Positions 20,368-64,000 of a stretch of 64,000 nucleotides of DNA are shown here, one piece after another; the stretch's first letter is position 1, and every line of letters starts with the position of its first letter. The translations under genes were made by a program, and so were the position numbers. The DNA comes from Amphiscolops sp. MND2022. Lineage: Eukaryota. The stretch is from contig OZ076415.1 in NCBI GenBank assembly GCA_964187785.1, positions 64,976,001-65,040,000 of the forward strand, in the 5' to 3' direction. The notes beneath the pieces are model-generated. The model ran no database searches. It saw only the letters and a list, made by a program, of their open reading frames with translations, and was not told the DNA's origin.

Positions 20368-20521
20368 TCAGTCATCCAGTTGACACAAGAGGGCGACCCC
20401 TCTGTTGACCCAATGGTTGGGGTCTCTTTTAGAGGGCAGGTCAATCATTAGCAGGTAGTTGGTGGAATGACCCGTAGTAGACAGGACTCCCCTTCTTTCT
20501 GTGGTTTTGTACAGGGGGCAG
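20368..20521 (-). CDS. DNAH12: Dynein HC terminal exon (CPLYKT...[11 protein letters not shown])
   Basis: gactcatag| acceptor, phase 2, TGA stop at 20370-20368. Confidence 0.92.
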
Positions 20522-23500
20522 CTATGAGTCACCGACGGGGATGAAAGGTCAAAGGTCAAATTTTCTGCTACCAGGATTACGGATTGACATCGTTTTTGTT
20601 TTATACAAGTAAAATTTAATTCCAAAAAACCAAAAAAAATCATGAGCGTGTGTTTGATTTGAGGTAAAGAAAATTGAACAAAAAGAAGAAAGTTTAGTAT
20701 ATTAATATTCTATAACATTTTATTCTATTTTCTTTTCAAATCAAGCATTTATGTAACCGTGAGCTCCAAAAAGCAATATAATCAAACCCATCGGACAAAA
20801 ACTTGTTAAAATTGCAATTTATTCACCGATTCTTTGTTCGCTGAACTCCGTAAAGAAAAAATTAACTCTGGGATATACTTCAAATAATGAAAAAAACGTC
20901 GTTTTTTATTTCAAAACAACAAATCTTTCGACACATTATATTTCAACATCGTTTCCATCCCTGTACTCCATCTGGTGGGTATTTCCAGAAACTTGTTCAC
21001 GCGGCTCGCCCACTGCGGACTCTTCTTTCTCTGGCGCTGCTCTCACTGGTTTGAGAATGATAGCCGGCATCTTCTGGAACAACACACGGGGAGGAGACTG
21101 GATCAAGGTGCGGCTGAAAAAAAATCGGTGTCAAAGTTCGTGAAGAAATTGACATGTGATACTTTGCTAGAAGCTTATATATACCCGCAGGTTCTTATGA
21201 GTCATCAGTATACCGTAGTCATTATTTTCCTCATTCGACCAGCCATCAAAACATCCAAACTACGGGAAAAGTAGCCTAGCGCCAAAATACTCAAAAGGAG
21301 ACCATTCAAGTTTGCAGAAGAATGTTTAAAAAACATTTTCGAAAATTCAAAAAAAATCTCTAAAACGTTTTGTTGGAAAGAGCTTCAGAAAAAAAAGTCG
21401 CATAGGGGAACCTTTGGTCTTTCTTCCACCTTATTCCATTTAAATTTAATATTCCATTCAAAATTTATAAGAGTGGACGTTTCACAGTGACTGAAGAAAA
21501 AAAGAAGAACCTGTCACTATATGAGTCGTGCACTTTTTTTCGAAAAACTCCGACTAAAAAGACCAGGATAAAAATTTACTCTATGAAAGATGGGGAAAAT
21601 TGTGAAAAACCGCAACGTTAACCCTAAACGACCCAGGCGTTTTTGCAATTTTTTTCAAAAAATTGGATTAAAAAATTTAAATCAATATCTCCACAACTAC
21701 GCGTACCAGAGAAACGAACTATAGCGCGTTTGAAAGGTCTGGTATGGGGCTTTCATTTTGGTCAGGTGAGCCCCTGTCGCCGCGCGCCCCCTCTTTCAGA
21801 ATTTTAGTTTCTTTTTCCGGTACCGCCGCTGCGCGGGGGCTTGTAGTAACAACATAATATTATTGGGATTTGTTGCGTAAGAACTTGATGTGCAAGTGCA
21901 TGGGGTTGGTTTTTGCTAAGGGACAAGATTTTTGAGAAAACTGGATTTCGCCAAAAAGTGAAATTTAGTAAAAAAAAATAACAATTTTCCGTGCAGAAAA
22001 GCTCATTTTTCTCAGTTTTGGAGATATTTTCACTTTTCCTAATGCTTGTGCCATTCAAACCAATCTAGGTACCAAGGAATTGTTGGAAAAAACTGTGCTA
22101 GAGAATATGGGCTACTGGCAAAACGGATTAGAAATTGAAACAATAGGTATCTGACTTTAAAGCACCGGTGGGTCGTTTCGGGTTAACATGGATGTGTTAA
22201 CATACCCATTGTGAACATGACAATCATCGATGTGATGAAATCATAGCTTTTTGATAAGACTAACGCTTTATAGTCCCATGCGCATCCTTCAAGGAACAAG
22301 CCATTGACGTACACAGATCCATTCGACAAAGCTGTGTCGAAACATTCCTGTCCGGTTACTTCAAACTCGAACTGCAACTCGTCGATTGGCAGCTTTTGTT
22401 TGCGTGAAAAGTTCTGCAGACATGCAGTCAGAAAAGCCTGCGTGAAGAAGAAACCCGGAAGCCAGAAAGTGGGCGGAGCTCCTTTCTCCAACCAGTTCTA
22501 GGAAAGATGGCGGACAGTTTTGGACAGGTTGAAAACATTGAAAGGGCAAACATTGAAAGATGGTTGATATTTTTAGTGTTCAAAGTTACGGCGGTTGATA
22601 TCTTGAAAAAGTTGGTTCCATAAAACATTTGAGACTGGCCAAATTTGAACCTTTCCATATTGAGCTAAAATTTGGGTTTCGATAAAAAAAAACGTTTTTA
22701 CAGAGGATCGAACCCGATACTTACAGGTCTACAAGATGCATGAAATTACCTCTTAGACTTCATTCGAAAACTGAAATTGTCATTTATATGTGACATCGAT
22801 AAATAGTAAATGAAATAATCTTTGAGAATCTTTTCGGGAACAATTTCTTGCTTTCAAGGGCTTAACTTCGTCAATACCATTGGTTGATTTTTTTTCGGTT
22901 CCTATAAGTGTACCTGGAAAAAGGTAAGCCTATGTCGCAGATCCAATACATAGCTGGAGAGAGGCTTGAGGGAGAGATATGATTGGCTGTTCCACAGAGA
23001 AGGCACCTTGTTGCTTTTCAAAGAAGTCGAGAGGTCCTCCAGCTCAGAAGTTAGAATGATCAGGCCCCTGGATGCTTTGATCACGTTTTCCAGGCTTCCT
23101 CTGATCAGGGCATTCAAACTAAGAAAGGTACGCTATTGCGGTAATCCAAAAGGCGGCGAATGATGTGAATATTTTTTGAGAAAAGTTTTTTTCATGATTT
23201 CAGACAGTTAAAGTTGAAGTTTCGATTCTTCAAGAAATTTATTTTAATTCTATTGAAGTTTTCAAGCATGAAACGTGCAATATATCCTTGATCAATATTG
23301 CTGTTAAGAAACTAAATCTAGGTTAAAACAAATCGGCTATAGTAGTTTCTATGCAACTGTTTCGCAGTTTCTATCGTAACAAAAAATATCTTGTATCCAA
23401 AGTATAACAACAACTAAGTATCATAGTATAACATGAATAGAGCATTCATTGATTCAAGCGTTTGAGAGTTTGTTTGTCAACAACTCTATTGATGCTCTCT

Positions 23501-26500
23501 TTGTGTTCTTTGTAGAGTGACCTTTGCATGTCACATACCCCCCCTCCATGTGGGTTTGTAGTTGTGGGGTAGTTTGATGTTGGTTCCGTATAATACGGTG
23601 AATTTATGGCTTGTTGTTGGTGTTTAACCGTATATTACGGTCCTCCTCCTCTTCATTGTTTTCCTGTGGTCTGGTCCGGTTTTCCTGTAACAAATCAAGG
23701 TTAGATTTAATTCTTTTTCTATTATTATTTGTTTGATATGGGATACCGCCTAATTTTTTGGTTTGTTTTGCAAAAGGGAGTCTTCTCGATCTTCTAATGG
23801 GTGTTTTCGGTTTAGTTGTTATATGGTCGTGGTTTATACCTGTTTCCGGCGTAAGTCTTGTTTCTTTGGAGTGGATCTGTAGTTCGTCGTTGACGTTAGT
23901 ATGGATGGGTTCGCCGTCACTGTTGGTATAACAGTTGAACTCGTCGTCGGAGACGATGCCTAAATTTTGATCCGTCATGATGCCGGCGTTTTTCTGTGGC
24001 GAGGTGAAATGCCCTTTCTCGTTTCTGGGCTGTTCGTTTCTCCGGAGCCAGTCCTCGCTACTCTCGTGGTTGCATGGTTTTGACGGTTCCTTCCTTCTGC
24101 ACATACAAGTTGTGGAAGAGTCCGTTGTTTTCGAGCAGGACGGCTGTTCCATGGTCGCTTGTCGGGTACTTATCCGCTTCGTCGGTGTTGTCGCGTCCTG
24201 CAACGGTAATGGATTTGATATCAGTTTTCTATGTATTGCCTTATTTTTTTCGGTTGTAACTGTGTGTTTTGTACCCGAGAGGGCTGTTTGTATCTGGTTT
24301 TTGAATTTTCTGCCAAGGGTGTTTTTTGTAAGCTTTTTTATAGAAGGAGAAGGGATAATTGTTCGTACTAACCGAGTTTAGCGGTTTTCTTGTCTGTGAG
24401 AAAGTCATTCCTCGTCTGTACTTCGGTTCGTTGACCTTCTTTTTGGACATTACCAAGTGGTCGATAATATCGACCGTAGAACTCCGGGTTATTTATACGG
24501 ACAAGTCTTTTGAGTCGGCTGAAATAGCATTTTTTAGATTAGTAAGTTTCGTTCTGGATTTTCATCCAAAATGAAGCTCGAAGTGTGTTTTTTGTATTTC
24601 TGAAAGGATGGTAAATCTGAGCACATGTAGTGCTTTATCCAGGCTATCGCGGAGAATCATTCCGTCTTCCAAATTTGCTTTTAGTAGATTCTTTAAGGAT
24701 TGGATGGTTCTCTCAGCCAATCTTGTGCCGGTAGGCAGATTTGCTGTACCGTTTTTACGGATAATGTTATTCTCGTTACAGTATTTGCTAAATTCTTTTG
24801 ATATGAATGCACTGCCTCTATCGGTTTTGATTGACTTTGGGACTCCGTTAATATTTGTGTATTCTTGTAAAAATGTTGTTACGGTTTCGTGGTTAGTATT
24901 TTTACAAATTTTTGCAACCGTTTTAATGTGCGAGACACGGTTGGGAAGATAGTTCTCCCTTGATATTATTGAAGTCGGGGTTTCGCTCTTCTGTCTATTC
25001 CCATTTGGTTCCTTTTTTCAGTAATTGTCTCAAGTTTTCTGTTTTCTCGGATAGGTTCGGTATAAATTTTGCCAAACATTGGATTGCCCCCAGGAGAGAT
25101 TTTAGAGATTTTGTGTTTGTAGGGGGGTTTAATTTTGTTTATTGCTTCCGTTTTTTCTTTGTTTGGTCTAATTCCATCTTGGGCGATGATGTGTCCTAGC
25201 CATACTGTTTCTTTTAGATAGAACTTTGATATTTTCTTACTTGCTTTGTAGCCTTCGTTTTCTAATTTTGTGAGTACCGATTCCAATCTTTCGGTGTGTT
25301 CTTCTTTTGTGCCACGTGTGACAATTATGATGTCGTCTATCCATACAGGTGTTTCGTGTCCGAGTGTACGGTCTATTTTCTCTTGAAATATTGTGGGTAT
25401 GTCTGCCGGGCAGTAAAATCCATTTCGGAATCGGTACTATCCGTTAATCTTCTCCCCTTAGTTGCAAAGTTGCAATGTTTGCTTGTTTCAGGTGCCAATT
25501 TCATTTGACCGTATGCGTAGTCTAGGTCTACTACGGACATCCAGATTGGATCGGTGTCGTTTTTTGATAATTCCGCGGATATTTGGTTGAGTAGTTCGTC
25601 AATGTTCGGCATGTGCGGTCTTTTTTTATACAGCTTTCATTTAGTTTTCTGGCGTCTGGTGCGATTTCGACGGATTTGTCCTTTTTTACCCTAATTACCA
25701 CGGCTAACACGAAACAATCTTCTTCGATAGTTTCTAATCTCTCCAGATGTCCGGCTTCTAATAATCTGTTCAATTCGTATTTTACGTCTTCTTGTAGGTG
25801 GTAGGGTATTGGTAGTGCTTTTTGTTGTATGGGATAGCAACAGGGTTTTACTTGTATTTTGACTTCGGCGTTCTTTATTGTGTGGTTGGTGGTGAAGAGT
25901 TTGTTATACTTCTTGTATAAGTTTTCTGATTGGTTGGTGCTGCTGTCCACTGAGATTTTTTTTACTGTTATTGGCAGTTGTTTTTACGAGTTTATTCCCA
26001 GTAACGGTGTGATATCGTCTCTTTTGGTGATCAGCATTGCTAATTTGGTTGATGTTTTGCTGTATTCTACGGTTACTCATGTTTTTCTCATGAATTTGAC
26101 TTCATTTTTGTTCACATCTTGGTATCTTTCTTTCATTGGTTTGGTTTCTTTAATGTCGTGTATCCTCTGGTCGTATGGCATGATGGTAACCGGAAACCGG
26201 TATCGATGATGAAGTTTTGTTTTTCCCCGTTTATTTTTATTTCGACACCGTAATGGTTTTTGTTGTCGGGTAATATCTTGTTTATTTGTCTTATTTGGCG
26301 GATTTCTTCGGGTTCACTTTCTTCTTCCTCGGAGCTCGCATCCACGTAGTTGATTCTTCTTTGATCAATTTTGTTTCGTTTGCTGCGGCATACTCGTGCG
26401 AAGTGGCCTAGTTTCTGACAATTATTGCATTTCGCAGTTTTTGCCGGGCATATATGTTGAGGGCTCTAATTTTGTTGTCCGCAGAGTCCGCAGTTTTTTT

Positions 26501-29500
26501 TTTGGTGTTGTGTTGCCGTATTTATCGGTTTTGTATTTCGGTTGTATTTTCTGGATTGTTTCTTCTTTTATTTTTTTGTCCATTGCAAGTGCGGGTGGTA
26601 TAGCTGATTGTTAATGTCGGCTGTCGTAGCTGTTTTGTGTGATGAGTTTTATGGTGGTTTTCAGGTTGAGGGTCTTTTCACGGATAAGTTTTTCTCGGAG
26701 TTTCTTGTCGGTTATGCTTGTGATAAATTTCGATATGAGTAGGTCTTTCTGTTTGATTTCTTTGAATTCACAGTCCTTCTCCAGCGTTATTAACTTTTTC
26801 CAATGTTCTTCTGGTGTCTCGTTTTCTTCTTGTTTGGCCCAGAAGAAATCTCCACGGCTGTGGTTTGTGTTTCTCTTTGGCATGTATTATTCTCTGATTA
26901 GTTGTATTAATTTATCGGTTTTGATTTTTTGATTGTGTCGGGGTCCGTGTTAAATTCGCCTTTTGTGATAATCTCGATTGCCGACGGTCCGGCGCCTCAG
27001 ATGAAGTCTTGTTTGATTTCTGGTTCTTTTGTATCCCACGGGTCACCGGTTGGTACTGTATCATCCGTTAGTATTTGTTTGATGTCGATATTGTGGATTC
27101 TTTTTATGTAGTGCCGAAATTTTTCGGTCCATTTTTTGGGTGTATATAGTTTCTTCCGTCAGGTCCGGTGTCTTCTAGATATGGTAGTTGTGTTTTTGTT
27201 GCCACGGCCGTTTTGTACTAAACGTAGGTTGATAAAATGTTTTGCGTCCGTGGAAGGAAGATTTGGTAAAATCTTGCTTACTGCGCCATGTTAAGAATGA
27301 TAAATCTAGGTTAAAACAAATCGACTATAGTAGTTTCTATTCAACTATTTCGTAGTTTCTATCGTAACAAAATGTATCTTGTATCCAAAGTATAACAACA
27401 ACTATCATAGTATAACATAAATAGAGCATTCGTTGATTCAAGCGTTTGAGAGTTTGTTTGTCAACAACTCTATTGATGTTCTTTTTGTGTTCTTTGTAGT
27501 GTGGCCTTTGCATGTCACAATTGCTTCGCAAAAATGGACTTTTACGGAAATCAAAAATAAAATTGAAAGAGATGAATAAAAATAAGGAAAAGTCTTTCAT
27601 TTGGAGCCCGCTTTGCATTAAGAATAAAAAATATTTTCGCATTCATTTTTCAATATCTTCCAGCATCTTTGTGAAAAAAGAAAGAAAAAAGTTTATTTCA
27701 TCAATTTCTTGGTTATCACTGGCAGTTCGGCAGCTCTTGAAATTTTCTTAGTACGGGTTGCGCGGAATGCAGATGCAATTAAATGAATAAAAGTTTTATA
27801 GATGTGATTTTGCTTCCAATCATTTGATTCCTCGAGAAGTTAATGATCTTAATCCATGATCTTGTATACGAATAAGCCTACTATTTCGCTTTGTGAGATC
27901 TCTGATGATCGTTTTTAGTTGTGTTCACTAATGAAACATGTGAAGTATTAGTTTCCTACTTGTTGAATCGCTCCAACTCCTGGACCAGCACCGTGTTGAG
28001 ACTGTCCGAGTAGCTCACCGGGTATTTCAGACACGCCTCTTTGATGTCAAACAGGGGCAGCAGCTGCAATAGGTAGGCAGTTACAGAAGCGTTTGTAGAA
28101 TTCGAGTTTTTTTAAATATTTGAGAGGCATCCTCAAGAGATTTTGGAGCAAATGGTTGACTGAAATTTGTCAAAAATAATTTTTAAACTTTGTGAAAACC
28201 AATAAAAAGTGCGAATTTGATTGTAAAAATTTCTCAAAATTTACAATTTCTAACTTTTGTAATTTTCATTGTAGAAAATTCAAATAAATATTTTTGAAAA
28301 CTACATATAATTCTAAGAAACATTCTTAGCTGGCAATTTTTCCTATTCCTGGCAGTTTTCAAAGTATTTGGATTTGAAATTTGCAATTCTAAAGCAAAGG
28401 AGTTGCGATATTTTAGAATGCTACTGCAGGCGGAATTATTCGATATGCTTTTGAATTGTGTTTTTACATTAAAGTTTTGGCAGAAAATTAAAATTGGGCA
28501 ATACTTCCTCTACAAAACAAGACCTCTGCAATTTATTCTCAAAAAGTCTTTTATGTGTTTGGAGTAAAGTGCAATATGGCACAAGACTTGGTGAAGAATA
28601 ACGCAAAGTCACACGTTTTTAATGTTTTCTCACTATTTTCAACTTGTTAGTTTTTGAAGTTTGAATTTTGAGTTTTCTATTGAGTCCTAGTTGAAATTGC
28701 TTTTCCTGATAACCAGCTTTACCTTCTCCGCACTATCACGTAGCAAGAGCGCATGTATCATAGACCACATTCTACGAATTCGTTTTACAAATCTTACTCC
28801 CAATGCATGTTGTCTATGATCTATTTTACAGTAGATAACAAAAAGTGGGCTCTGTGTATGTTGTTTAATTTCGTCATTTAATTAAATTTTTCCAGGCTGC
28901 CTCTGATTTTGTACAAAACGTTCAACAGCGTTTTGTTCTGTAGAAAGTTACCATAGTACCTTCCGGCATAAAATTCATTAACCATAAATCATTTTATTCG
29001 CTTGATATCGTCCATAAATGATGACATCTGATTTTTCAAAATGAAAAATTGATTCTTAAAAGTACTGCAATACCACTTTCCATGAGAGTTTGTTTCATTT
29101 TAGAGTACGGAACACCTATGACCCAGATGTTACTCATACTTGGAGGTTTTGAGTTCATCTCGTTTGATTCATTGTACAGTGGCAAATCGGATCAGCTCTT
29201 GTCTCGTTGATAGATAGTATCACGTGTCGTGTACTATCTTTACAAGCAACATTTCAAATTGTAGTATCACGTGTCGTGTACTACTGAGCTCCGTTTTTTC
29301 CCCAAGAGACTTTATCAAGAAAATTAGTTTCGACTTTCTGCCACCAATCCTGGATTCTATGTAAACGATGTTGATGATCAGGACTCTTACGCCATTCCAT
29401 GGCGATTTTGAGTTGGGGAGGGATCCCTTCAGGTCAACCGATATCGAATTATGATGATGAGTTATGCGTGGTTTAGTATTATTTATTGTTGTATGGCATA

Positions 29501-32500
29501 TATTTTACATCATCAGTTGCCTGTAAATCCATGATAATAATAATAATAATAATAACAATTTCCTCAGTTTCAATGCGACGAGGGTCAAAAATTTTGTGAC
29601 TGATCAAAGTTGATCTTTTTTTTACTTTTTTAACGCAAAATACATTATTTTTTACCTGTGACCATATACCTAAACGAGGGATGAAGGACTTGCTCAAGGC
29701 CCAACGATGGTGAGTTGAGAGGGATTTGAACCTGGTACCGCCTCAGTACCGGCGGAATTCTCTATTCACTGCTTCACTACACCACGTTCCTCTAAACCAG
29801 TGTAGCATGCACCCCTTAATGAGTTAGCAAAGTGATAGATTCGACTGGAGGATTCATTTTCTAGGTTTGAAAACCAGCTTTTCTATTTGATTTGTTATTT
29901 TCCGCCCATATTTCATATGGGAAAGGAAAGCATTGAAATCAAAAGGTGTTTTTTACAAAATTTGCCAAGAATTATTGTATACGTTGTATCAACAGGTACA
30001 TTCACAGAATCCACTTGACATAAATTTAGTTCCATGCGATATGTATTTGTAAAGAATTTTGGACTTTTTTGGGTGACCCCAAATGACCCCAAAACACAAA
30101 AATTGCAAGCTTTTTTGCAATTTTTGTAGTTTTTGAACATTTACAGCTGATAACATACCTGAACAGATCAAAGGCAAAAAAAAGCTATTGAATTAAGAAA
30201 AACCAACTTGCTCAAAATTGATGAAAGGAATAAAGAAAAACCTTAATGGTCGAAATTTGTAACAGCAGTAATTGTTTGAGGCCGTCTTAATTGTCAATTT
30301 TTGCCAAGATAAGTATTCAAAAGCAATGAGGAACAAGACGGGAACGTCTCAAGTCGGCGCTATATCTAAAGCTCAAAAAGCGCAAAACATTTTTTTTTGG
30401 AAAAAAAACAGAAATTTTTGAAAAAAAATTCTTTCGGAAAATGTCGCACAGTGCCGAAAAATGTAAAAGGGGGACCCTTTTTGATTTATAAACACGCATT
30501 CTGTAGCAAAATAACAAAAAACTCAAAGGGGGGACCCTTTGGGGACATTAAAAAAATTTCGAGAAAAAGTCTCACAGCGCCGAAAAAAAATCGAAAGGGG
30601 GGAACTTTAGTCCCGTCCGGGCTTGTATATTGTAACGTTTAAAAAGTAAATGAATGCGCTCCCCGTTTGCCTTTAGCGGTCCAGTAGTTTAGTACTTATT
30701 TAGTAGTTGAACGTTAATTTTAACGTTCGTCGCTTCGAGTCTGTCTTAAATAAAAAAAAAGAAAAAAAACGAGTGACTGTAATAGTCGGGCTCTTTTCTT
30801 AAGAAAAGCGCCGACTAAAAACAGGTTTTAGCTCTGGCGTTTTTCTGAAGATGCATCTATTTAAAACGAGTGACTGTAATAGTCGGGCTCTTTTCTTAAG
30901 AAAAGCGCCGACTAAAAACAGGTTTTAGCTCTGGCGTTTTTCTGAAGATGCATCTATTTAAATATGCTTAAAGACTTTGAAGGATCGGACGTTAACTTCC
31001 ATTGCCACCAGCAATGAGCTTCTTTTATTGAGCCAAACTAACAATGAGTCCGTCTAAAATATTCACTTTCGATCTTTGGCTAAAATGTCGTTTTTACAAT
31101 TCAAATGTAAAAAGGTCGTCACACAGTGCTACTAAGTTTTCTGATTAGACTGTGGACTTAAAACGATTTTGTTGCTCAAATGATTTGGGGCGGAAAATAT
31201 CCCGCTGGTCCGCGGGCGTCTTGTTTACAAATCGTTCAGCAACTTTGTAAAGTAGTGGTTTCAACAAGACTTAAATTTGCAGTGATTCTTTCGAGTTGCT
31301 GGTATGCGTTGAGGACATGGTATACAACTAACTCAATCCTACGTTTCGTACTATGATCTTGCCATAGAGCATCACACAATCAGTGTACAAATTGTGGCAC
31401 CATTACAGGAAATACTTTGTCGTGAGGGTGGCGCGATCATTCTACGAGAGTACTGAGACTTGCATGGAGGGTCAACCTGCGTATATAAGCCGTAGATTAA
31501 AAAGGCCTGCTTTTTGTCACCAGAGTGACACTGAATAGACTTTCAGATGAACGTAAAGAACAGCAAAAAAGAACCGCCATCTAAAAAAACTGAGCCGCGC
31601 GTGTAATATTCGTCGAAACGTTTGATGGAAACTTCGAAGTCAAATTCCCACTGGCATTTTGTTCTCACCCCTGACAATCTTATAAATCACTTTGAAATGC
31701 AATAAAATCATGAACATTTTTTTTGTTTTTGGATTGTTTTTCGTGATGCTAGTTGCACCTCAAGACACTTTGTGTAGATCTTGTCTTAGAATTGTGCTTT
31801 CCAGATTTCCTTCTTCGCTGATGAATCAGCTCCAGTCTGAAGACGAAAAATAAGGTTTTCAACCGATGACGCAATCACTGTCGAGGTTATTCAAAGAATT
31901 CAAGCTTCAGAAAACATCCAAACGCCAAAGAAAAAGCTGTTTTTGGAATAAATCTGATACCCACTTACTTGGTAAAACCACAAGGAGTTTTTTCTATCAT
32001 GAAAAAAAATACAAAAACAACTTTGGCCACTTTTCATACACTTCATCCCAAACTTTTTATACCCCAAATATTGAAAATGCATGGGTTCATATGGTTTGTC
32101 AAATAGGAGTCATTTAACAGCATGGAAAGTTCAAATTCATGTCCATACCTTGCTGATGATGTTGTTAGCTATTTCGATGGTGGGCTCTTCTGAGAATGCA
32201 GACATCTGGGTGTCATCAATGTGGGGCTCCTTTGTCTTGTCTGGATCCTCGGGTGCGGATTGTTGTTGTTGTTTGGGTATGCTGGCACTGGTGCCATAGA
32301 CCAACAACATGTTGTCCAGAAATGACCTCTGCTCCTTCAACTCTCTCGTTAGGTCAGCGTTCTCTTGTAACTCCAACATGGTAGCTACTTGGTTGTCTGG
32401 CATGGTCTGTAATGAAGAAGAAAGAAGAAAGTTATCTTTCCCAATTCCGCTGGAAGTTCAAGTTGACACCGAATAAGCAGTTCATTTTTCTAAATCGACG

Positions 32501-47500: not shown

Positions 47501-50500
47501 GAGTTTTTTCTTCCTTAATTAATTCTATGAAAAAATGCATCGGCTCATTTTATTGTCACATTTAAGGTTGCTTAACATCACTAGAAGGGGCTTATCTTAA
47601 GTTGTGAAGCAATTTGAAGTCACTTGAAAAACCTGAACTTTATTTAAGTACCTGTCTTTTTCTCCACCCAGTCCAGATATGAGTTTATCGGCCCTGCTGA
47701 GTTTCTTGGCACAGAGGTCCACTTCCTTTTCCAGCCCGTTCTTTCGCTCCTCTGTGACCTTGAGCTGGTCTTGCAAGGCGGTGAGTTTGTCTTGCACCAG
47801 CTTCAGTTCGTTCCTCTTGGCGTTGAGGGAAGCCATACAGGCAGCCAGATCCCCCTCTGCTTGGGCCAGTTTGGCCTTCTTGGGGGCGACTACTTTTGAG
47901 ATACGTTCGTACATCTCGATTGCCAACACCTAAGGACACATTCTGCAAAATGGATAGAAGAGCTGCATACTTTTGCAAAGTATTTGGCGAGTTTCCACTT
48001 TGCAAAAGTATGCTGCTCTTCTATCCATTTCAAGATAGAAGACTATATAATCTTATAATCTTATATAATCTCTTATAAAATTAAGATTCTCTTATTGCCA
48101 GACAATAACTTTGCTTTAACGAGTTTTCACCCCAAATCTTCCTCAAAATTTTTCCATAGTCCATAGTAAAAAATGATTTTTGTTAGTGAGAACCTTTTCT
48201 ATTACTATCAACTGATATCCATGTACATCAGTTGATACTTATAGAAAAGATTCTTACCAACAAAATCAACACGAAGCCAGTTTATGTTTAGGCTATAGCT
48301 GTGGTCTCGGACATCACTTAGAGGAACAGAAACATGCCAAGGTGTTGACAAACAGTAGAATTTTAACATATCTGAAGCCTAAACATAAACTGACTTCGTG
48401 TTGATTTTGTTGGTAAGAATCATTTCTATAAGTATCAGCTGATGTACATGGATATCAGTTGATCGTAATAGAATAGGTCCTCACTAACAAAAATAATTTT
48501 TTACTATGGACTATGGAAAAATTTTGAGGAAGATTTGGGGTGAGAACTTGTTAAAGCAAAGTTATTGTCTGGCAATAAGAGAATCTTTCATTAACCCTAA
48601 AGAGCCCAGTGGTGCTTTAAAGCAGCCTACCTTTTTTTCCAAATTCTGATTCCTTTTGCCAGTGGCCCATTTTCTCTAAGACAGTTTTTTTCAACAAGTA
48701 ATTGGTACATAGATTGATTTGAATGGCACAAGCATTAGGAAAAGGGAATATGTCTCCAAAGCTGAGAAAAATGCTTTTTTTTGCACAAAAAATAGTTATA
48801 TTTTCTCAAAATTCAGTTTTTGACGAAATCGCGTTTTCTCAAAAGTCTTTGATTAGTAGAAAAAACCAACCAAATATCGTGCCACAGCAAGCCCTGGTGC
48901 AACAAACCCCTATAATATTCTGTTGTTACTACAAGCCCCCGCGCAGCGGGCCGCACGAAGTGCTGAACTGCCGCGAAGCGGCGGTACCGGAAAAAGAAAC
49001 TAAAACTCTGGAGAAGCGGCGACAGGGGCTCACCTGAGCAAAATGAAAGCCCAATACCAGACCTTTCAAACGCGCTATAGTTAGTTTCTCTGGTACGCGT
49101 AGTTGTGGAGATGATGATTTGAAATTTTTCATAAAATTTTTGTGAAAACTTTTAAAAACGCCCGGGTCAATTGGGGTTTAAGAAGTTAATGATAGCTTAT
49201 TCGGCAAAAAACATTTTGGGATGTTTTTCCATCCATTCCCAACAAAAACAGCATATTCATATTCAGTAGCTTAAGTTGTCAAGCGATTTTGGGATAAAAA
49301 TAATTATGGTAGTTTTAGATAATAAAAATCCGTAGATTTTTAAACCTTACAAACAACGTAATGATACAACTGAAACATGAAAGTGGTAAAAACCACATTT
49401 GTTCTAATATTCTAAACCACATTTGAGGTTTTATCAGAAACTTTGTCGTTAGGGGCGACTACATTTCGTGGGGGTAGTTTTCGTAGAAGAAAATCAGTGT
49501 TTGTAAAATCTTCAGTTGAATTGATTCAAATCTACAATACCAGCAAATTTAGCTAAGTATTGAATTTCCCACAAAATTAAGCAAAAGGTTTCACTAACCA
49601 TGCTGACTTTCTCGTAAATCGTTGACTCAAAAGTGAAATTACATAACCTACGTTAATTGTTAATCATCACAACATCGATTGTTTCATTGAAAAGTCATTC
49701 ATGAGTTTCTTGAATGACACACTCCGAGCGGGGTTACCAGGGTTACATCCTTACTGTTCATCCTTGGGCACAATAAGGACTAATTTTTGTATTGGCCGAG
49801 ACAAAAGTGTCTTGGATCCGTCTTTACTCACAACTTCAACTTCCACATCTCTCACAAGATTATCACGTCCAGGGTAGACGTTTTTTACAATGCCAATCTT
49901 CCAAATACCTCGAATTGCAATTTGATCCTCTAACAAAACTACATCGCCGGCTTGAACGTTCTTCCGTTATTTTTTCCAGGTTTTGTAGTAGGCCATTTGA
50001 GGCAAGAAAGACTGCTGCCTTTTCTTCCAGAACGAATTCATAATAGTCTCAACTAGCTTATGTCGAGCCATCTTTTCTGTTTTGACATGGATGAAAGGCA
50101 CCGATTGATTCATTGTTCGGCCAAGTAGAAGACTATTGGGAGACAAATAAAAACCATCTTCGGGTTGAGTAGGGTGTCTGCCAATAGGACGGTCATTGAG
50201 CAAATTAGCTGTCTCAAATAGCACTGTCTGGAATTCGATAAGGGATAAAACTTGACTACCAATTGCGAAGAACAAACATTTTTTCACAGAAGCGATCAAT
50301 GATTCTGCACATGCTTGACGCCAAGGTGCACAGCTTGGTGCAAACTCCCATCTAACTCCTTTGAAAAGCAGTTCTTTTGACAAAATATCAGGATCGAGAA
50401 CTCGATAAACACTTTGGAGTTGCCTGTTTGCACCAACCAATTGTGTGCCAGAATCTGAATGAATCACTTCGGGGTAACCTCTTATAGTAACAAATCTTCG

Positions 50501-53500
50501 GAATGTTTGCAAAAATTCTTCTGTTGAGTAGCTCAAAACAATGTCCAAGTAAACTGCTCTGGAAAACAAACATGTAAAAATAGCCGCATACACTTTCCTT
50601 ACAGTTGATTTTCTGAAGCAATCCTTAACTTCATACGGTCCAAAAAGATCAACGCATATGCTTAAGAAAGGATATGAAAGTTGAGTTCTTTCATCAGTAT
50701 GTGCTCCCATTAACTGAACAGCACTGGTTTTGTTGAAAATTTTGCAACCGGTGCATTTCTTCAGGATATATTTTACTAGTTTCAACAAATGAAAAACCCA
50801 AACTTTTGTTCTGACTTTGCTGGCTGTGTGTAAAACTCCACCATGTCCCATTTCGTGAGCATCTTTGATCAAGAGTTCAACTGATTGCGACTTTGGAATT
50901 AAAGGCACTGTCTGGTGAATCCTCCGCCCCACATGAATAATTCCATTCGGGTCTAAAAAAGCACCCAATGAATCAAATTTCCCAGCTTCAAAATCTGTCA
51001 TAATCTTGTTTTGTTCAGACCTCACTATAAATTCCCAGGCTTCTTTCACTTTTTCGGCATTTGGCATATCTTTCACTTTCCTGAACGATCTTGAAGAACA
51101 AACTGACAACACTCGGGCAACAGTTCGAACAAGTGAGTTAACATTCGAAAATCTAGTAGTGTCAAATTCCACAAATGGAGTTGATTTTCTTTGATTAACT
51201 AGAAAACTTTTGCAGGGAATAACTTCAGGCAGTAGCTCTATCGCATACATTTTTTGTTCAAGGGGCCATTCAAACACAGGATTTTTGAGAAATGAAGGTC
51301 CTGTTTGCCATTGGCTATCAACTCTGAGTTCTTTCGGAGAAGAACCTCTAGAAATTAAATCAGCTACATTGACTTCACCTGAGACCCAATAGAAAGCGTT
51401 CCGGTTTTCAGTTTCCTGAATTTCGCCCAGTCTCACTCCAGTGAAAGAGTTGAAACCATAGGAGTCCTTTTGTATCATTGCTCTTACAACTTCAGAATCA
51501 CAAAGGAACTTCACATCTTTAAAATTGAGTCTGGAATGTTTGAAAAGAAACTTTTTTAATCTGACAGCAACTAAAACACCACACAATTCCAGTCGTACAA
51601 TAGATATTTGCTTCTTCGGGGCTAGTCTGCTTTTAGCAACAATTAACCTAGCTTCATTAGTCCCGTTTGAGAGAGTCCATACCGCGTAGGCAACTGCCCC
51701 ATATGCATCTTTGGAGGAATCACTGAATATGACAAGTATTGGATCACCAACGCCAATGTCATACGGTCTGATTCAACGCACAAACTCAATTTCAGTCATT
51801 TCAAAAAGTTCTCGAAACAACAAAATCCATTCAGTAGTGAGTTCATCCGACAAGGCATCATCCCAATCAGAAGCTTCCTCTGAATTCCTTGTTTTTCGCA
51901 TCAGTTTTTTAGCTTTTACAATGAATGGTGTTGCTAATCCTAAGGGGTCGTAAGTGGAATTGACTTGACTCAAAGCTTGTCGTCTTGTTAAATTGTCAAT
52001 ACCATCTTTTTTGAGATCCTCTGCAGCATGGTACGATTTGATGGGTTCTTTTCCCGATTTTGGCTTGATGACAATTTTCGACTTGAATACAAAAACAACT
52101 TTCTGCAAATTCCAGTAAAGTCCCAAAACTTTTTCATGAGCTGCGAGACCTACTATATCAGATGGCGGCTCCTTATGACCGGAATAAATCCAGTTTTTGA
52201 TTTTAAAAGATCCTTCAGCTAACATTTCATCAATTCTTTTAGTTCGTTTGGTGGCTACGTCATGATCATGGACGCTGTCGACAATGTCATCCATATAAGT
52301 TGAACTTAGAACAACCTTTTTTTCTTCCAAGTACTCGTCATTTGCCATTTCCGTTGTTTTCCTTAAGGCGAGCTAAGCAATTGTTGCTGCGGGTCTGTCA
52401 CCAAAAGAAACTACTTGCATCATATAATGGTCTGGTTTATCATCTTGTCGGTAATCTCTCCACAAAAAACGATGTGTCTGTTGATCTTCAGGATCTAGTC
52501 GCACTGTATGATACATTTGTTTCACATCGCCGATATAGCCCACAAAATGTTCTCTAAATTTTACTAGAATACCCAAAAGATTGCCCAGTAGATCGGGTCC
52601 TTTAGCCCAATACTCATTTAAAACGTGACTTTTGTAATTTGCAGAAGCGTTGAAAACTATTCGACAAGGAGTAGAAGCTGAATCTTGCTTTAGTACTTCA
52701 TGATGGCTGATATAATGCACTGGACCGTCATAATCTAAATCTTCTTTTGACATCTTCTTCGCGACTCCTCGTTCAATCATGTCGTCGATTTGACTTTGGT
52801 ACGTTTTCGCATGAATAGGATCCTTCATGAGCCTCCTTTCAGTAGTGAATAACATCTTCTCTGCAACGTGAAAGTTATTCGGCAATTGCTTTGAACTTTT
52901 TATCCAAGGGTACTTTGCAGTCCAAACTTTATCACAAATAGTCAAACCCTTTTCAATTATTTCTAACTCCTTTTGTTCCTTGATTGAAAACTCAGAGGAA
53001 CCAAGAGGACAACTACCACATTGGCAGTTGCCACATTTGGGGTTACAAGCAATTCCTAAGTTTTCAACGTTGTAGAACTCTTCCATAGTGATAGCTGTCT
53101 GCACGAAGTTAACCTTGGTGAAGGTATAGCCAGACGAGTGGCAGCTACTACCACCAACACATTTACCAAAAGTATTTTCAAACAAGACAAAGTTATTCTT
53201 TCTTTTCACAGGCACAGGATGATACTGAACCACGTTCAAACCTAAGAGTAAGCCAATATGAGCTTTCTGACTATCTTGACAAGCAAAATCTTCCGGAAAC
53301 AGTTTTTTCTGCAGTTCTGTATTGTACATATTTCTAGAAATTTCGTCAACGCCGTAAGCTTCAATTTGCACTAGGTTGTGTTTCCGGTCCTTGATTTCCA
53401 TAACAAAGAGATTCGTTTGTTTTTTGACAACTCTGCCCAATGTTTCCATGGTAATCGACACAGGTTTTCCTTTCAACTTCAAGTTATTTGCTACATTATT

Positions 53501-56500
53501 GAGAATTAAAGAAACTGTAGACCCAGAATCCCATAGGGCTATTACTTCTTGTTTGTTTGAGCCAGAGTTGACTTCAATAGGCATAACCTGCGGTAAACTT
53601 TTTTCCTGATTGTTTGAAACATCACATTTCGCAGAAAAACCGTTTGTTTCATTTCTGTTGCTCAAAAAATTATCATCGTGTAAAAGAAGATGATGATTTT
53701 TACCGCATTCAGCTCTGCTGCAAACTTTTCTAGTGCGACAAGTTCTGGATGTGTGCCCGGCGACGAGACAATTGAAACAAGCACGATTAGCTTTAACAAT
53801 ATCAGCTCTTTGCTTCGCATTTTTGTCCAGGAACAATCGACAGTCTTCAGTTTTATGAGTTCCACTCGGATGAAGAAGACACTTGTTTTTCGAAAAATCA
53901 GCTTCTTCACTTTTAGAAATGGTCATTTTCACATTTCCTTTGATATCATCTCTGGTACGTTTCGTCAAATTGATCTCATATTCAATCACCATTTTTCTTT
54001 CGAGTAAAAACTTCAAGAATCCGGGAAACTTATCCCTTTTATCAATTGTACTCTCTTTGTCATAAATTCGTTCTATCCATTTTCTTCTCAATTCGTCTGG
54101 TAGCTTTTCTTCAAAGATTGAAATGATTGTACTATTTTTGATTTCTGATTCACGTCCCAAGTACTTCAGTTCTAGATCAGCTTTTTAAATAATATCAATA
54201 AAATTCAACAGACGACGTCCTTCATTTTCTCGCACAGGCTTGTAGTGTTTTATGTCGTTCAACACAATTTCAACAATTTTACCTTCATCACCATACCGTT
54301 CTTCTAAACGTCGCCACATTTCTTTTAAATCATCACTCATATTCCTCACTAAACTTTTTATGTTATCTGGTAAAGCGTTTCTCAGAGCGTATGACACAGT
54401 AGCTTCATCCTTTATCACATTTTCAACTTGCTTTTCAAAATCCTTTCTGAATTGAGGCCAGTCTCGGCAATTTCCGCTGAACTTCGGAAACTTGAGCTTT
54501 TCCATGTGTGTAAACGATTTTCTGTCTTGCAAAACATCACCGCCGCCGTTTTCCGACTGAAAAGGTTCTGAACTGGAGGCGGAATACATCATATCAAAAA
54601 ACTTCGTTGAAATTTCCTTGAGTTCGTTGTTTTCCTTTTCGAAAGTTGTCTCCTGGTTTACTAATTCAGATAGAGAATCAATGACAATCTTCACTTCTTT
54701 GAATTGGTTATCGAAGTCGTATTTGACGTTTTTCAAAACTCGTTCTGTAACTTTTGGAAGGTTTTCAAACGATTGACAAATGTTGTGTAATCGATTAACT
54801 TCAACCCTGTACTTTTCTTTCAATTTTCTAACTGTCTCATTTATTTCATCTTGACGTTTCAAATCATCTGATTCCGCAAGCTCTATAGTTTTCTTTTCTA
54901 GTTCCTCTTTTTTCCCTTTTCATTTTCTCCTCTTTCAGCAAAATGTCGAGTTGGCACTTTTTTGATCTTAGTTCATGAAATCGGTTTTCAGGCTCGTCAA
55001 TCCAAGAAATTTCATTATCGTACATTTCTTGGTCTAAATTGAGCAAATACTCATTTTGCTTTTCTTGAAGAAGATTCCATGTATTCACAATGTCGTCAAA
55101 ACACAACTGGTTTTCTTCGGCAGATTTTTCAACTTCAGATAGAAAAGTCTCATACCTGTTACATGCTTTGGTAAAGTTTCTTAAAGACAAACTTCTAGCC
55201 CTCTGTTCCACTTGGACTTGAGAAGGGGTTGTCATGATTTGAATTTGCCGTTAGGGGCGACTACACTTCGTGGGGTAGTTTTCGTAGAAGAAAATCAGTG
55301 TTTGTAAAATCTTCAGTTGAATTGATTCAAATCTACAATACCAGCAAATTTAGCTAAGTATTCAATTTCCCACAAAATTAAGCAAAAGGTTTCACTAACC
55401 ATGCTGACTTTCTCGTAAATCGTTGACTCAAAAGTGAAATTACATAACCTACGTTAATTGTTAATCATCACAACATCGATTGTTTCATTGAAAAGTCATT
55501 CATGAGTTTCTTGAATGACACAGAAACTGACAGAAACATTTAAGATAATCAACCAAATCATCGTTTTCGGAACATTTTGCGAAGGTCTAAGCGAGCGATT
55601 TATAAGCGAACATTTCCTCGTTCTAAGTCTATAAAAGGTATACCCAAGCTACTACGAGAGAACATTTTGTAGAAAATAATCGGGTCGAAAAAAATATCCA
55701 TTTGAGTTTTGATAATGTTTCAGCGTACAGAGAAAAATTGGAAATATGGTGAAAAATTCAAGGATGTAAAAATCATGTAAATTTTGCATGCATCTGAGAA
55801 AAACCTGGCAGCAAAATTAGAGAGAAATGCAATCTCACCCATCGGCAGAGTCCTTGTGCGGCTGAAGAGGCCTTGGCGACCACGTCAGGGGAGAAGTCAG
55901 GATTGGTCATGAACTCCCTTCTGATCCTGTCCATAGAGGCCTACACCAGCGCGATGACGTCAGCGATGACGTCAGAGATTATCACAAGACCGGATTCAAA
56001 CTCTTCTACTGTGGGAAAAAAGTTTCAAATTTCTGAAAATTGTAATTTTTATTGCCTTTATATTCAGTTTTCCGAGACATGATTTACTGTGAAGTGACTT
56101 TTTGCTCAGTTCAATAAAAAAATTCAAAAGATACCAATTTTGCGTCTCTTGTTGATATAAAAAAATCGGATAACTGATACTTTTATATTCTGAAAGGGGT
56201 CTACAAACTTTAACAGTTGCTATAGATGTCACTAGGGGAGCAAATAACGTTTAGGGAATAACGTCTAAGAAATTCGGGAATAAAATCTAAAGGAATAAAG
56301 GAATCTAAAATTCAATGTTTTAAGATAGGGAATGATCATGACTTGGTTTTAGACTAAACAATGTTCTTACTCTGAGGTGGAGGCTCTCTGCTGATGTGGA
56401 TTTATATAACACACGTGACAGGACTCAAGATATTCAAGATTCCAAGACAAAATCCAAGATCTAGCCAAGATATTCAAGATCCAAGATCTTTCCAAGATAT

Positions 56501-59500
56501 TCAAAATTTCAAGATTTCCCTAAGATCTTGGCAAGATATTCAAGATGTCAAACGCTGGGCGTTATTCCCGTTTTGCATTTAGATGTTACTCCTTAGACGT
56601 TATTCCCGCTCGCCAGATGTCACGACATGGAGTGTTAAACAAAATTGATTGACTAGATCGGATTACTGATTCCTGTTTGAAATATATTTCTATTCATATT
56701 GATATTCGTATCTGGTTGAAGTAATCCCTGGTTGATGTTGTCCTTGTCGAAAGTCTTGAGGGTGTTGAGGAAGTTCATGTCTCCCAGCAGCTTCTTCGAG
56801 GGGCCCCAATAGCTGTTGACCTTGGCAGTGCCCCCGTCGGGGTCAGCCACTTTCTCAGGGGGGATGTCTTTCAACACACAAATGGCCTCCATCACCAATT
56901 TGACCCCTGAACAAACAGTTTCTTCAAATGCTAATTTTCCTTGAAAATCAATCAGGTATGGTTCCGATGAATTCAATAATTAGACAGCTTTTTTGACAAG
57001 GATTGGAACAATTTTGCGTGTAAATGTGTTTCTGAACAAAAATTAAGTTCATAACTATGATTTGAAAATGCTGAATAATCATTCCAAAGAAACCATTGAA
57101 AAATTCCACTTTTTTTAAATTTAAAAAATGCGCAAAAGTTGTTGAACAAGCTTTTGCACAAAAAAAACGTTTTTTCTTGAGTATAAAAATTCAAGCTACT
57201 GAAGTCAGCTACTAGCAACTAATGGATCCTAAGTGAAACTTTAAAGCACTCTTTAACCCAAACGTTTGTTTCAAAATCATATCTATTGCCGAAAGTGAAG
57301 AGTTTGAAGAAACTGAACCTATTGGAGGGTTTTTCATGCTCTTGATGATCGTAATGTCCGAAGGCTTCAAAATGTCCAAACAACGAGTCGCCTCCTCCAA
57401 AATTGGAACTGCTTCTGCTAAGTCGTTCTCGCACTCGGTTTTCAGCTCTTGTGCAGCATCTGCGTATTCATTGGCTACCGACTCCTCTCGTGTAACGTTT
57501 TCTCGTTTCGTTTGAACTCGGTTGCTCTCCTGGAGCGTCGTCATTAATTCTCCCACGTTAAAAATCGGAATTTCAGTCAAATTTTTTGTCTTGATTAAAC
57601 CTATCATTTCTCTAGATCTTATTTATTATGCAAATGAAACGAAATTTACGAACACGAGGATACATACTGCAGTTTTAAGTGCCATGGCTTTCATAGATGA
57701 AATTGTGAGGAATCTAGCAGAATCATGTAGTTTTGTGTACTGCATCATATTACTCCACGTACGAGATCAAATGGCTTTACTTACAGGAAAATATAAAAGG
57801 AAGGGCCTTAAAACATATGTAAACGTGTTAGATTCAAGTCCAGTATTGTTTTAGAATCAGTTCTAATCATTCCAAAACAAGACGGGAACGTCTAAAGTCG
57901 GCGCTATATCTAAGGCTCAAAAAGCGCAAAAAATTTTTTTTTTAAATTGAAATTTTTGAATTTTTTTCTTTCAGAAAATGTCGCATAGTGCCGAAAAATG
58001 TAAAAGGGGGGACCCTTTGGGCTTTATTAACATATATTCTGTTGCAAAATATCAAAAAACTCGAAAGGGGGACTCTTTTGATACATTAAAAAAATTTTTA
58101 AAAAAAGTCGCACAATGCAGAAAAAAAATCAAAAGGGGGGACCCTTTAGTCTCGTCCGGTTTTGTAGGCTACGGTAAAATAGTAAAAAATGAAAGGGGGG
58201 GACCCTTTTGCACTAATTTCCGCTGACCGGACTTGGCCTAATGGTAGTAGTTTTAGTAGTTTCGATTGTAGGAAAAGTGGCCCAATCAGAGTGAGATTGT
58301 AGTCTGACAAAAAAAAACTAGCCACAGTAAGTGTCGGGCACTTTTCACTAGAAAAGCGCCGACTAAAAAACAGGATTAGACGTAGCCTAGTAACAACTCA
58401 ACTTGGTTCCATGTTTGGCTTTGCATGCTTGGAATTGCGTTGATCTTATGGTTCCGTGTTTTATAATATTTGGGTTTGTTGTTTCATCGGCATAATATAA
58501 CACTCATGCTTTAGTGAGACGTTTTAGTCCTTTTAAAATATAAAATATCTCAAAATGACATTTTTAAACTTGATGAGACTTGGGTAGTCACCTGAAATTC
58601 CTCCAACTTTAGTTGATTTTTCCTATGTTGAACATTTGTTTCCCTATAAAGTGTGCCATTTTTCCCTTCAATGAAAAAACATTGCAGTGCCACATTTAGA
58701 AGTTTACATAAAATAAAATTCGTGGAGACAGATTTTGACTTATTTAATCAACCAACTCTGACCATTTTCATCAGGTTTTTCATCTTTTTTTTTGTCCTGC
58801 TCCGGTGAAAAATATTGAACAGAGGTTTTCGAGACGTTGTTGGAATTTTTTAAATAAAAATTTTCATAACTGGACTTTGATTTATTCGCAAAACCGACGG
58901 TTGTAACAACGCCCCTTGACTGTGTGTTCGGCCATTTTGACAGCTTCTCGCGTCGTTTCCATCAACTTCGGCTGCAATTCTTTCAAGTTTTTCTCCATTT
59001 CGGCAACTTGGGAAGATGCGAACGCCAGTTTTTCTAATCCCACCTCGTATCGTCTCTTAGCCTTCGAGACTTCTTCTCGTTTCTTGGCCATCAGTTCTTT
59101 GAAGGTCAAAATGAGTTCTCGGAAAGAAGTCGGAGTTACGTAATTGTATCTGTTTTGTTCAGCTAGCAATCTAAAACGTGCAACTATTACGACATGCCTT
59201 ACTGAAGGCAAGTTACCGAAGAGATGAAAGATGTGATAATCCTGAAATTGGTTCCCAGAAACGAATGGAGCCATCATTGTAATACTGTGAGAGAGTGACC
59301 TTGACTCTCGAACTGACCACTGTAAAAGAACATAAATTGGAGCAAGTTGTAAATAAATGATAATATACATAATGAATATTATTTACAAACAGAACTGTAT
59401 AAAATAACAGAAGAGATTCAGCCATTCACCACATGGTCTTTATCAAATACAGTATTGCTCTACATTCAACCTTCTTTAATTTAGTCGTTGCACGTCGTTA

Positions 59501-63282: not shown

Positions 63283-64000
63283 CTTAAAGAGAATATCTTT
63301 CAATCAATGAACGATGCTAGCTCTGACAGTTGTAACTGCCCATGCTTGCACTCCACCGCAAATGACCGATGACCACCAGTGGATCACCAGTGACCACCGG
63401 TGGAGGCAACTTTGGACCAGTGGTCACTTTTGTCCACCGGTGCTCCACCAGTTGAGACAACTGGAATTTTTGTTTTAGAAAAAAAAACGATGACTTTCGG
63501 GAAATTAATGAAAATGTAATCTTTGAGTAGCATCGTTTCAATATTGAGTCCGAGGGGTTACGTTAACAACATTTGTAGCATTTTAAGGAGTTTTCGCCAC
63601 CGCGTGTCTCGAAGCCGCGACGTAGCCAATGCTGCAGATGAAATGAAGGTCAGGCAAAACAAACAAAATTTAGGAGCTGATAGCGGAAAGGTAAAATGCT
63701 GGACTGTAAACAAATAGATTACAGGTTGGCGTCACAATTCTTGCACAAATTTTTTGGACCATCAGTTACCACGGAAACAGCGGCAGATACCATCTCAGTG
63801 GTCCAAAAGTGGTACTTGGTGGGATCATCGGTGACCACCGGTGAACTGTAGTTGATCGCCAACCCGAGTTTGTCTCAGTTGGTCAAAGCAGACTATAAAA
63901 ATATATTTTTTGAGGTTTTGTTTCTCAATATGCTGTGTCTTATGTGAACTGATTTTTTTTATTCAAGACAACCTTCTTATCACTATGAATACCATAAAGT

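Follow-up and report, generated by a model that had tools for sequence, protein, structure and literature searches.

Candidate GG-AG introns in an inner-arm dynein heavy chain gene suggest a relaxed requirement for U at intron position +2

Few signals in eukaryotic gene expression are as strongly conserved as the GU with which introns begin. When three introns of a single gene appear to begin with GG, are they spliced at these sites, or do ordinary GT donors, assembly errors or gene decay lie behind the unusual junctions? This question is raised by an inner-arm axonemal dynein heavy chain gene on the minus strand of contig OZ076415.1 (Amphiscolops sp. MND2022). The window, that is, the whole stretch of DNA that we analyzed, comprises 64,000 nucleotides (nt), positions 64,976,001 to 65,040,000 of the forward strand. 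Most probably, the three are U2-type introns removed precisely at AG|GG (the bar marks the exon-intron boundary), giving a functional full-length dynein, in a genome whose 5' splice-site recognition tolerates bases other than U at +2. The actual cutting at GG, its constitutive use and the spliceosome component responsible are what we infer; the genomic observations that bear on them are presented below.

The dynein gene and its GG junctions

The gene model was built independently, from stop-free segments rich in GC at third codon positions (GC3) and by enumeration of the frame-compatible junctions between them. Within the window, it consists of 26 exons and 25 introns, which join into one open frame, 1698 codons long and closed by ...CQLDD-stop. 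The gene extends past the end of the window at position 64000; exon 1 starts at the V codon of VAMKSAG, after an acceptor TTTAAG that we read from the upstream contig. Translated exons have their best PDB matches in human and pig DNAH7, DNAH12, and DNAH3, and two of them are about 72-74% identical to human dynein. The Pfam domains Dynein_heavy, AAA_lid_11, and Dynein_C fall on successive exons with contiguous profile positions, and the stalk, the microtubule-binding domain, AAA5-6, and Dynein_C follow one another in the order expected of the DNAH7/12/3 group. One open reading frame (ORF) in this region, at 45971-46888, is in the wrong frame and was rejected as spurious.

A preliminary description of this DNA had reported three AG|GG junctions, and all of them are present on the minus strand where it placed them. 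Read from the window sequence, they are AAG|GGGCGT (J1), CAG|GGATTA (J2), and CAG|GGATGG (J3), with the last exon base before GG at 58915, 56728, and 20961 and the downstream exon starting at 57529, 55940, and 20521, respectively. In wider context, the donors on the minus strand read ...CACACAGTCAAG|GGGCGTTG... for J1, ...ATCAACCAG|GGATTACT... for J2, and ...GAGTACAG|GGATGGAA... for J3, and the acceptors ...CGCTCCAG|GAGAGC, ...GGTGTAG|GCCTCT, and ...ACTCATAG|CTGCCC. The extents of the corresponding introns are given in Table 1 together with those of the other features discussed here.

Table 1. Positions of the dynein gene, its GG-AG introns, nearby GT sites and intronic repeats in the window
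Feature	Positions	Strand	Remarks
Inner-arm axonemal dynein heavy chain, DNAH7/12/3-like, C-terminal part (AAA4 to C-terminus, ~1690 codons)	20371..63279	-	26 exons; upper end approximate
Intron 3 (J1), GG-AG, 1385 nt	57530..58914	-	GTCAAG|GGGCGTTG ... CGCTCCAG|GAGAGC, phase 0
Intron 5 (J2), GG-AG, 787 nt	55941..56727	-	AACCAG|GGATTACT ... GGTGTAG|GCCTCT, phase 0
Intron 25 (J3), GG-AG, 439 nt	20522..20960	-	GTACAG|GGATGGAA ... ACTCATAG|CTGCCC, phase 2
Alternative in-frame GT donor, 6 nt upstream of J1 (ACA|GTCAAG)	58919..58920	-	use would delete V-K in stalk coiled-coil 1
Alternative in-frame GT donor, 6 nt upstream of J3 (GGA|GTACAG)	20965..20966	-	use would give HQMD-CPLYKT, with loss of the conserved Tyr
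BEL/Pao-type long terminal repeat (LTR) retrotransposon, ~6 kb, intron 6	49442..55521	-	long intact ORFs; Pfam PF05380, PF17921, PF18701 on homologues
High-copy ~500 bp repeat in the J1 intron	57888..58393	.	word depth ~10^6 vs ~80 for single-copy sequence

Apart from these three GG donors, the remaining 22 introns in the window all have GT. Two more introns, located just upstream of the window on a contig identical to it, are GT-AG, bringing the census to 3 GG donors among 27 dynein introns. The same 22 introns had previously been described as GT with one possible GC; in the independent model, no GC donor is necessary. Non-GT donors were also considered at introns 18 and 24 and rejected, as canonical GT-AG solutions fit the Pfam profile. 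Namely, intron 24 can be read as AAAGC|GTTAGT joined to 21113, with a product that fits Dynein_C, and intron 18 has a GT donor under both of its two possible options. Of the 22 GT donors, 14 also follow an exonic AG, and among these 14 the intronic cores are often weak (e.g., GTTCAG, GTACTT, and GTTCTA). Given this proportion, the presence of an exonic AG before all three GG donors has a chance probability of 0.64^3 = 0.26, which is not significant alone. The intron base at +3 is A at J2 and J3 and G at J1.

Most animals have very few GG donors, which favors a trivial explanation: the G at +2 might be an assembly error, or the gene might be a pseudogene whose introns no longer need to be spliced. 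A second haplotype allowed both possibilities to be assessed. The ENA assembly ERZ25074608 contains two contigs of the locus, of which ctg185391 is 100% identical to the window and ctg183114 represents the second haplotype, with an intron identity of ~92-99% and large insertion differences from the window. All three GG donor regions (61 nt each) are unchanged in ctg183114. The locus is also found in four public runs (X1-X4), all of them genomic DNA of one sample, whose contigs run from exon into intron. Across J2, the Logan contigs of X1-X3 are the same as the window, and the differences listed for X4 miss J2; at the J1 donor, no difference is listed in the DNA-run contigs. The preliminary description had named a T at +2 as the mark of an assembly error. 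The G does not stem from faulty assembly, because it is kept at +2 in both haplotype contigs at J1-J3, and in the DNA-run contigs at J1 and J2.

Decay of the gene fares no better. Its frame is intact for 1698 codons, and a comparison of the haplotypes across 4716 coding nt shows 30 differing codons (25 synonymous, 5 nonsynonymous) and neither indels nor stops. This pattern indicates that the gene is maintained and would therefore have to be expressed and correctly spliced; on the evidence of the two haplotypes, it is under strong purifying selection. Artefact or decay is thus a very improbable account of the three junctions.

Donor choice at the individual junctions

J2 provides the strongest case for the use of a GG donor. 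In the peptide obtained by splicing at GG, residues 1-50 align without gaps to DNAH12, to the DNAH7 microtubule-binding domain (6rza), and to DNAH3. Exactly four residues separate the conserved DKDNI from M..IR, a spacing that is shared by five metagenomic homologues reading through this region uninterrupted. Neither GT nor GC occurs in the final 35 nt of the exon or within ~50 nt of the intron start, and the downstream exon cannot begin earlier, since its acceptor AG falls within a TAG that is in frame. From this agreement, we consider it very likely that the GG site is the donor used at J2. At the J2 position, six of eight distant homologues from JGI metagenomes have no intron, and the other two have an intron 5 codons upstream; with at most 67% identity, these sequences are uninformative on the history of the donor. 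In the latter two homologues, the intron is GT and follows ...EYDK (L012 2433-2600, L015 3001-3170).

The other two junctions are less simple. According to the preliminary description, sliding the boundaries does not produce GT-AG introns. This holds for J2, where no GT or GC is within reach, but not for J1 and J3, each of which has an in-frame GT 6 nt upstream (Table 1). Shifting the boundaries at J1-J3 gave no alternative intron ending in AG. It may be asked whether only J2 is a GG intron, with J1 and J3 cut at the upstream GT, constitutively or in tandem with GG, so that each product is two residues shorter. GT is the default donor, and on a simple 1/16 estimate a GT at -6 would occur by chance in at least two of three sites with a probability of only ~0.01. 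The absence of A at +3 of J1 is a further point in favor of this alternative.

The protein sequence argues otherwise. At J3, the GG-spliced product HQMEYSCPLYKT aligns across the junction with HQDIYVCPVYKT of DNAH3, with which it shares HQ..Y.CP.YKT. It also aligns with VYKCPCYKT and IYHCPCYKT of kinetoplastid dyneins and with HYLCPMYKT of Chlamydomonas, sharing Y.CP.YKT. Cutting at the upstream GT would remove the Tyr of this motif, which is conserved from kinetoplastids to mammals and is encoded here in frame and at the right spacing. The GG site is thus likely the donor used at J3. For the exons flanking J1, colinearity with solved dyneins is exact in six of eight cases (DNAH12, DNAH7, DNAH3 [human and a second chain], and two Chlamydomonas inner-arm dyneins), whereas the remaining two are shifted by a single residue. 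J1 lies in stalk coiled-coil 1, whose length is tightly kept, and cutting at GT would leave it two residues short relative to the six colinear structures. In addition, with matches at 3-4 of 9 positions (4 of 9 for J1), the upstream GT sites fit the U1 consensus less well than the GG sites do (6-7 of 9). Based on these alignments, GG is probably the donor used at J1 as well, and a gene in which J2 is the sole GG intron appears unlikely.

Several observations nevertheless weigh against GG splicing. The part of the coiled coil that contains J1 is poorly conserved, and the junction-spanning peptide alone gives E = 0.3, which is not significant. J1 (AAG|GGGCGT) is without A at +3, a base that almost all GA/GG donors of the copepod Eurytemora affinis have. 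The in-frame GT sites at J1 and J3 could be real or alternative donors, and all four runs found for the locus come from genomic DNA of a single sample.

The GT at -6 could also act without being cut. In human FGFR1-3, as summarized in PMC7072748, a GA donor is located 6 nt downstream of a GT donor. There, the GT is reported to recruit U1 for a cut at the downstream GA site, and by analogy the GT at J1 and J3 might do the same for the GG site; in that summary, the FGFR spacing is the same as that found at J1 and J3. J2, unlike the FGFR genes, has no GT at -6, and the upstream GT sites at J1 and J3 are poor U1 targets. Counted by eye, a GT at -6 occurs in none of 36 E. affinis GA/GG donors, compared with two of three here. 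The FGFR site further differs, as far as the summary describes it, in being isolated, alternatively spliced and dependent on special neighboring sequence. A helper role of this kind is therefore improbable. The GT sites upstream of J1 and J3 may be alternative tandem donors, landing sites for U1 that aid the downstream cut, or coincidental.

In sum, removal of the three introns at AG|GG appears to be needed for a normal dynein because homology, reading frame and conservation between haplotypes agree. Homology and population evidence thus make it very probable that these introns are truly spliced as GG-AG, in a genome where the +2 requirement is relaxed.

Proposed recognition of the GG donors and comparison with other systems

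How might such donors be recognized? We propose that J1-J3 are ordinary major-spliceosome (U2-type) introns with AG|GG 5' splice sites, and that splicing exactly at AG|GG would yield a full-length functional inner-arm dynein heavy chain. Recognition of the 5' splice site would rely on the exonic AG and the intron G at +1, aided by A at +3 and G at +5, and would tolerate a base other than U at +2. Candidate causes of this tolerance are a variant U1, a modification of a small nuclear RNA (snRNA), or a change in U5, U6, or Prp8. In the window, scans with Rfam and for tRNAs gave no hits, and no snRNA gene is present.

Alternatively, the three introns could belong to the U12 type removed by the minor spliceosome, or they could be assisted by a structure in which the two ends of the intron pair with each other (a "terminal clasp"). 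The U12 type was taken to have /RTATCCTT as its 5' splice site and, 10-20 nt before the 3' end, a TCCTTAAC branch site. The donors GGGCGTTG, GGATTACT, and GGATGGAA are unlike RTATCCTT, and a U12-type assignment was rejected. No TCCTTAAC-like site is found at a suitable distance in J1-J3; the sole TTTTTAAC, in J1, lies ~28 nt from the 3' end. The clasp has some support at J1, where the donor AGGGGCGTTGTT pairs with the 3' end of the intron over 12 bp including G-U, at -27.3 kcal/mol. This duplex is within the lowest 2% of mismatched intron-end pairs and has z = -2.3 against shuffles. No excess of end pairing is seen at J2 (z = -0.95) or J3 (z = -0.02), and across the 25 introns the matched ends pair no better than mismatched ones (-15.1 vs -14.8 kcal/mol). 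A U12-type or clasp-assisted origin of the three sites therefore seems very improbable relative to relaxed U2-type recognition.

As a general feature of the dynein gene, the clasp was rejected, with J1 alone being marginal. The J1 helix joins AGGGGCGTTGTT (58905-58916) to AATGACGACGCTCC, just before the acceptor (57530-57570), on the minus strand, with a significance of ~2%; the two haplotypes supply no covariation that would bear on it.

GC-AG introns, the common minor variant of the U2 type, are a comparable case. In these introns, as we propose here, a mismatch with U1 at +2 is offset elsewhere, especially by the exonic AG. The base at +2 is C in that variant and G in ours.

In humans, GG donors make up ~0.01% of all donors (PMC5714493). 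A frequency of 3 in 27 is far above this value and argues for a lineage-level tolerance of G at +2 after an exonic AG. Such a tolerance of the spliceosome, proposed in the preliminary description, is supported by homology, frame, conservation between haplotypes and this frequency; the use of the splice sites is here predicted from genomic sequence, a difference from E. affinis. The same description stated that GA/GG donors are common in E. affinis and in the appendicularian Oikopleura dioica, and the literature agrees (PMC5714493, PMC7072748): these two species are the animal outliers (Frey & Pucker 2020, PMC7072748).

In E. affinis, about 12% of the donors are GA/GG (Robertson 2017, PMC5714493). 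They always follow an exonic AG, almost always have A at +3, and are used constitutively, at lineage-specific intron positions and with a canonical U1 (PMC5714493). The dynein gene resembles this system in having an intron G and a non-pyrimidine base after an exonic AG, in the proportion of such introns in a long multi-exon gene (~10%, 3 of 27 here; 10-12% in E. affinis), and in that the non-GT sites are required for the full-length protein. J2 and J3 (CAG|GGAT) also fit the five GG donors published for that species, each of which reads AG|GGA and one of which is AACCAG|ggatta (PMC5714493). In contrast, J1 has G at +3, and we found three GG and no GA donors, whereas the ratio of GA to GG in E. 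affinis is about 5-6:1. At E. affinis rates (~10% GA, ~1.7% GG), three GG and no GA among 25-27 introns would be expected with a probability of roughly 10^-3.

The proteins and introns of this locus set it apart in other ways. The genome of Oikopleura is compact, and its introns are very short; those of the dynein gene measure 0.35-8 kb and are rich in transposons, and its exons are ~70-75% identical to human. This identity suggests a slowly evolving lineage, and is a hint that the lineage is neither a copepod nor a larvacean. Homology searches with a dynein exon, the pol of the BEL/Pao element (Table 1) and an ORF with S5 domains gave close matches only among ENA or Logan fragments; the best hits with a species name were transposons of coral, barnacle and shrimp, at 37-41%, and an Atlas search pointed loosely to clusters of Rotifera or Arthropoda. 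None of the proteins of this genome appeared under an NCBI or UniProt name, although both databases contain E. affinis proteins, which makes a species other than E. affinis probable. The two systems are alike at the donor itself: in the G(A/C/G)-AG introns of O. dioica, +2 is relaxed and the exonic AG and +3 A are conserved (PMC7072748).

Judging from these comparisons, the locus is probably a further member of the phenomenon of relaxed donors known from Eurytemora and Oikopleura, and plausibly belongs to a new animal lineage. A more specific scenario can be put forward only tentatively, at somewhat less than even weight: a further lineage, neither Eurytemora nor appendicularian and with slowly evolving proteins, may have relaxed +2 independently, with a predominance of GG, and some of its sites are perhaps supported by the GT at -6 or by end pairing.

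GA/GG use at the percent level is known from no more than two animal lineages, and its mechanism is unsolved. If the proposed splicing is true, another lineage, with conservative proteins, long introns and a bias toward GG, would make it possible to trace, by comparison, which change in the spliceosome is responsible, with U1 variants, snRNA modification, and Prp8/U5/U6 as examples of where to look. There is also a practical consequence. Standard software for gene prediction and spliced alignment, when it allows no donors other than GT, GC, or AT, would break or truncate roughly 1 in 10 introns of long genes here; annotation of such a genome therefore needs donor rules that demand only the G.

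Transposons and repeats in the dynein introns

The two haplotypes also differ in the mobile DNA of their introns. The BEL/Pao-type element of intron 6 (Table 1) is lacking in the second haplotype, which joins 55521 to 49442; thus, its insertion is recent and polymorphic. It is not part of the splice phenomenon. The ~500 bp repeat in the J1 intron, whose word depth implies tens of thousands of copies, is likewise missing from the second haplotype, and in the DNA runs one allele lacks it, with contigs that join 57887 to 58394; the alignment of the second haplotype (L003) skips 57888-58364.

Another repeat family, with roughly 1000 copies, is found at about 56200-56565 in the J2 intron. In the second haplotype, this intron is longer by more than 15 kb of transposon DNA, including integrase-bearing elements (L002 1-15396 / L003 6464-20639). 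The additional DNA also contains a 181-amino-acid ORF with ribosomal protein S5 domains (L002 12973-13518), whose relatives were found only among ENA proteins. A gypsy-like element of ~8.5 kb, with RVT_1, RNase H, and integrase, is inserted in intron 24 at ~21713-21722 in the second haplotype only (L008 8253-12375 / L009 4910-13482). Decayed gag- and pol-like retroelement ORFs at 23400-27200, in intron 22, are related to that element at 67-75%. Finally, intron 11 contains a short tandem repeat at ~41090-41215 on the minus strand, directly upstream of exon 12; in one frame, this repeat can be read as TTKFL units.

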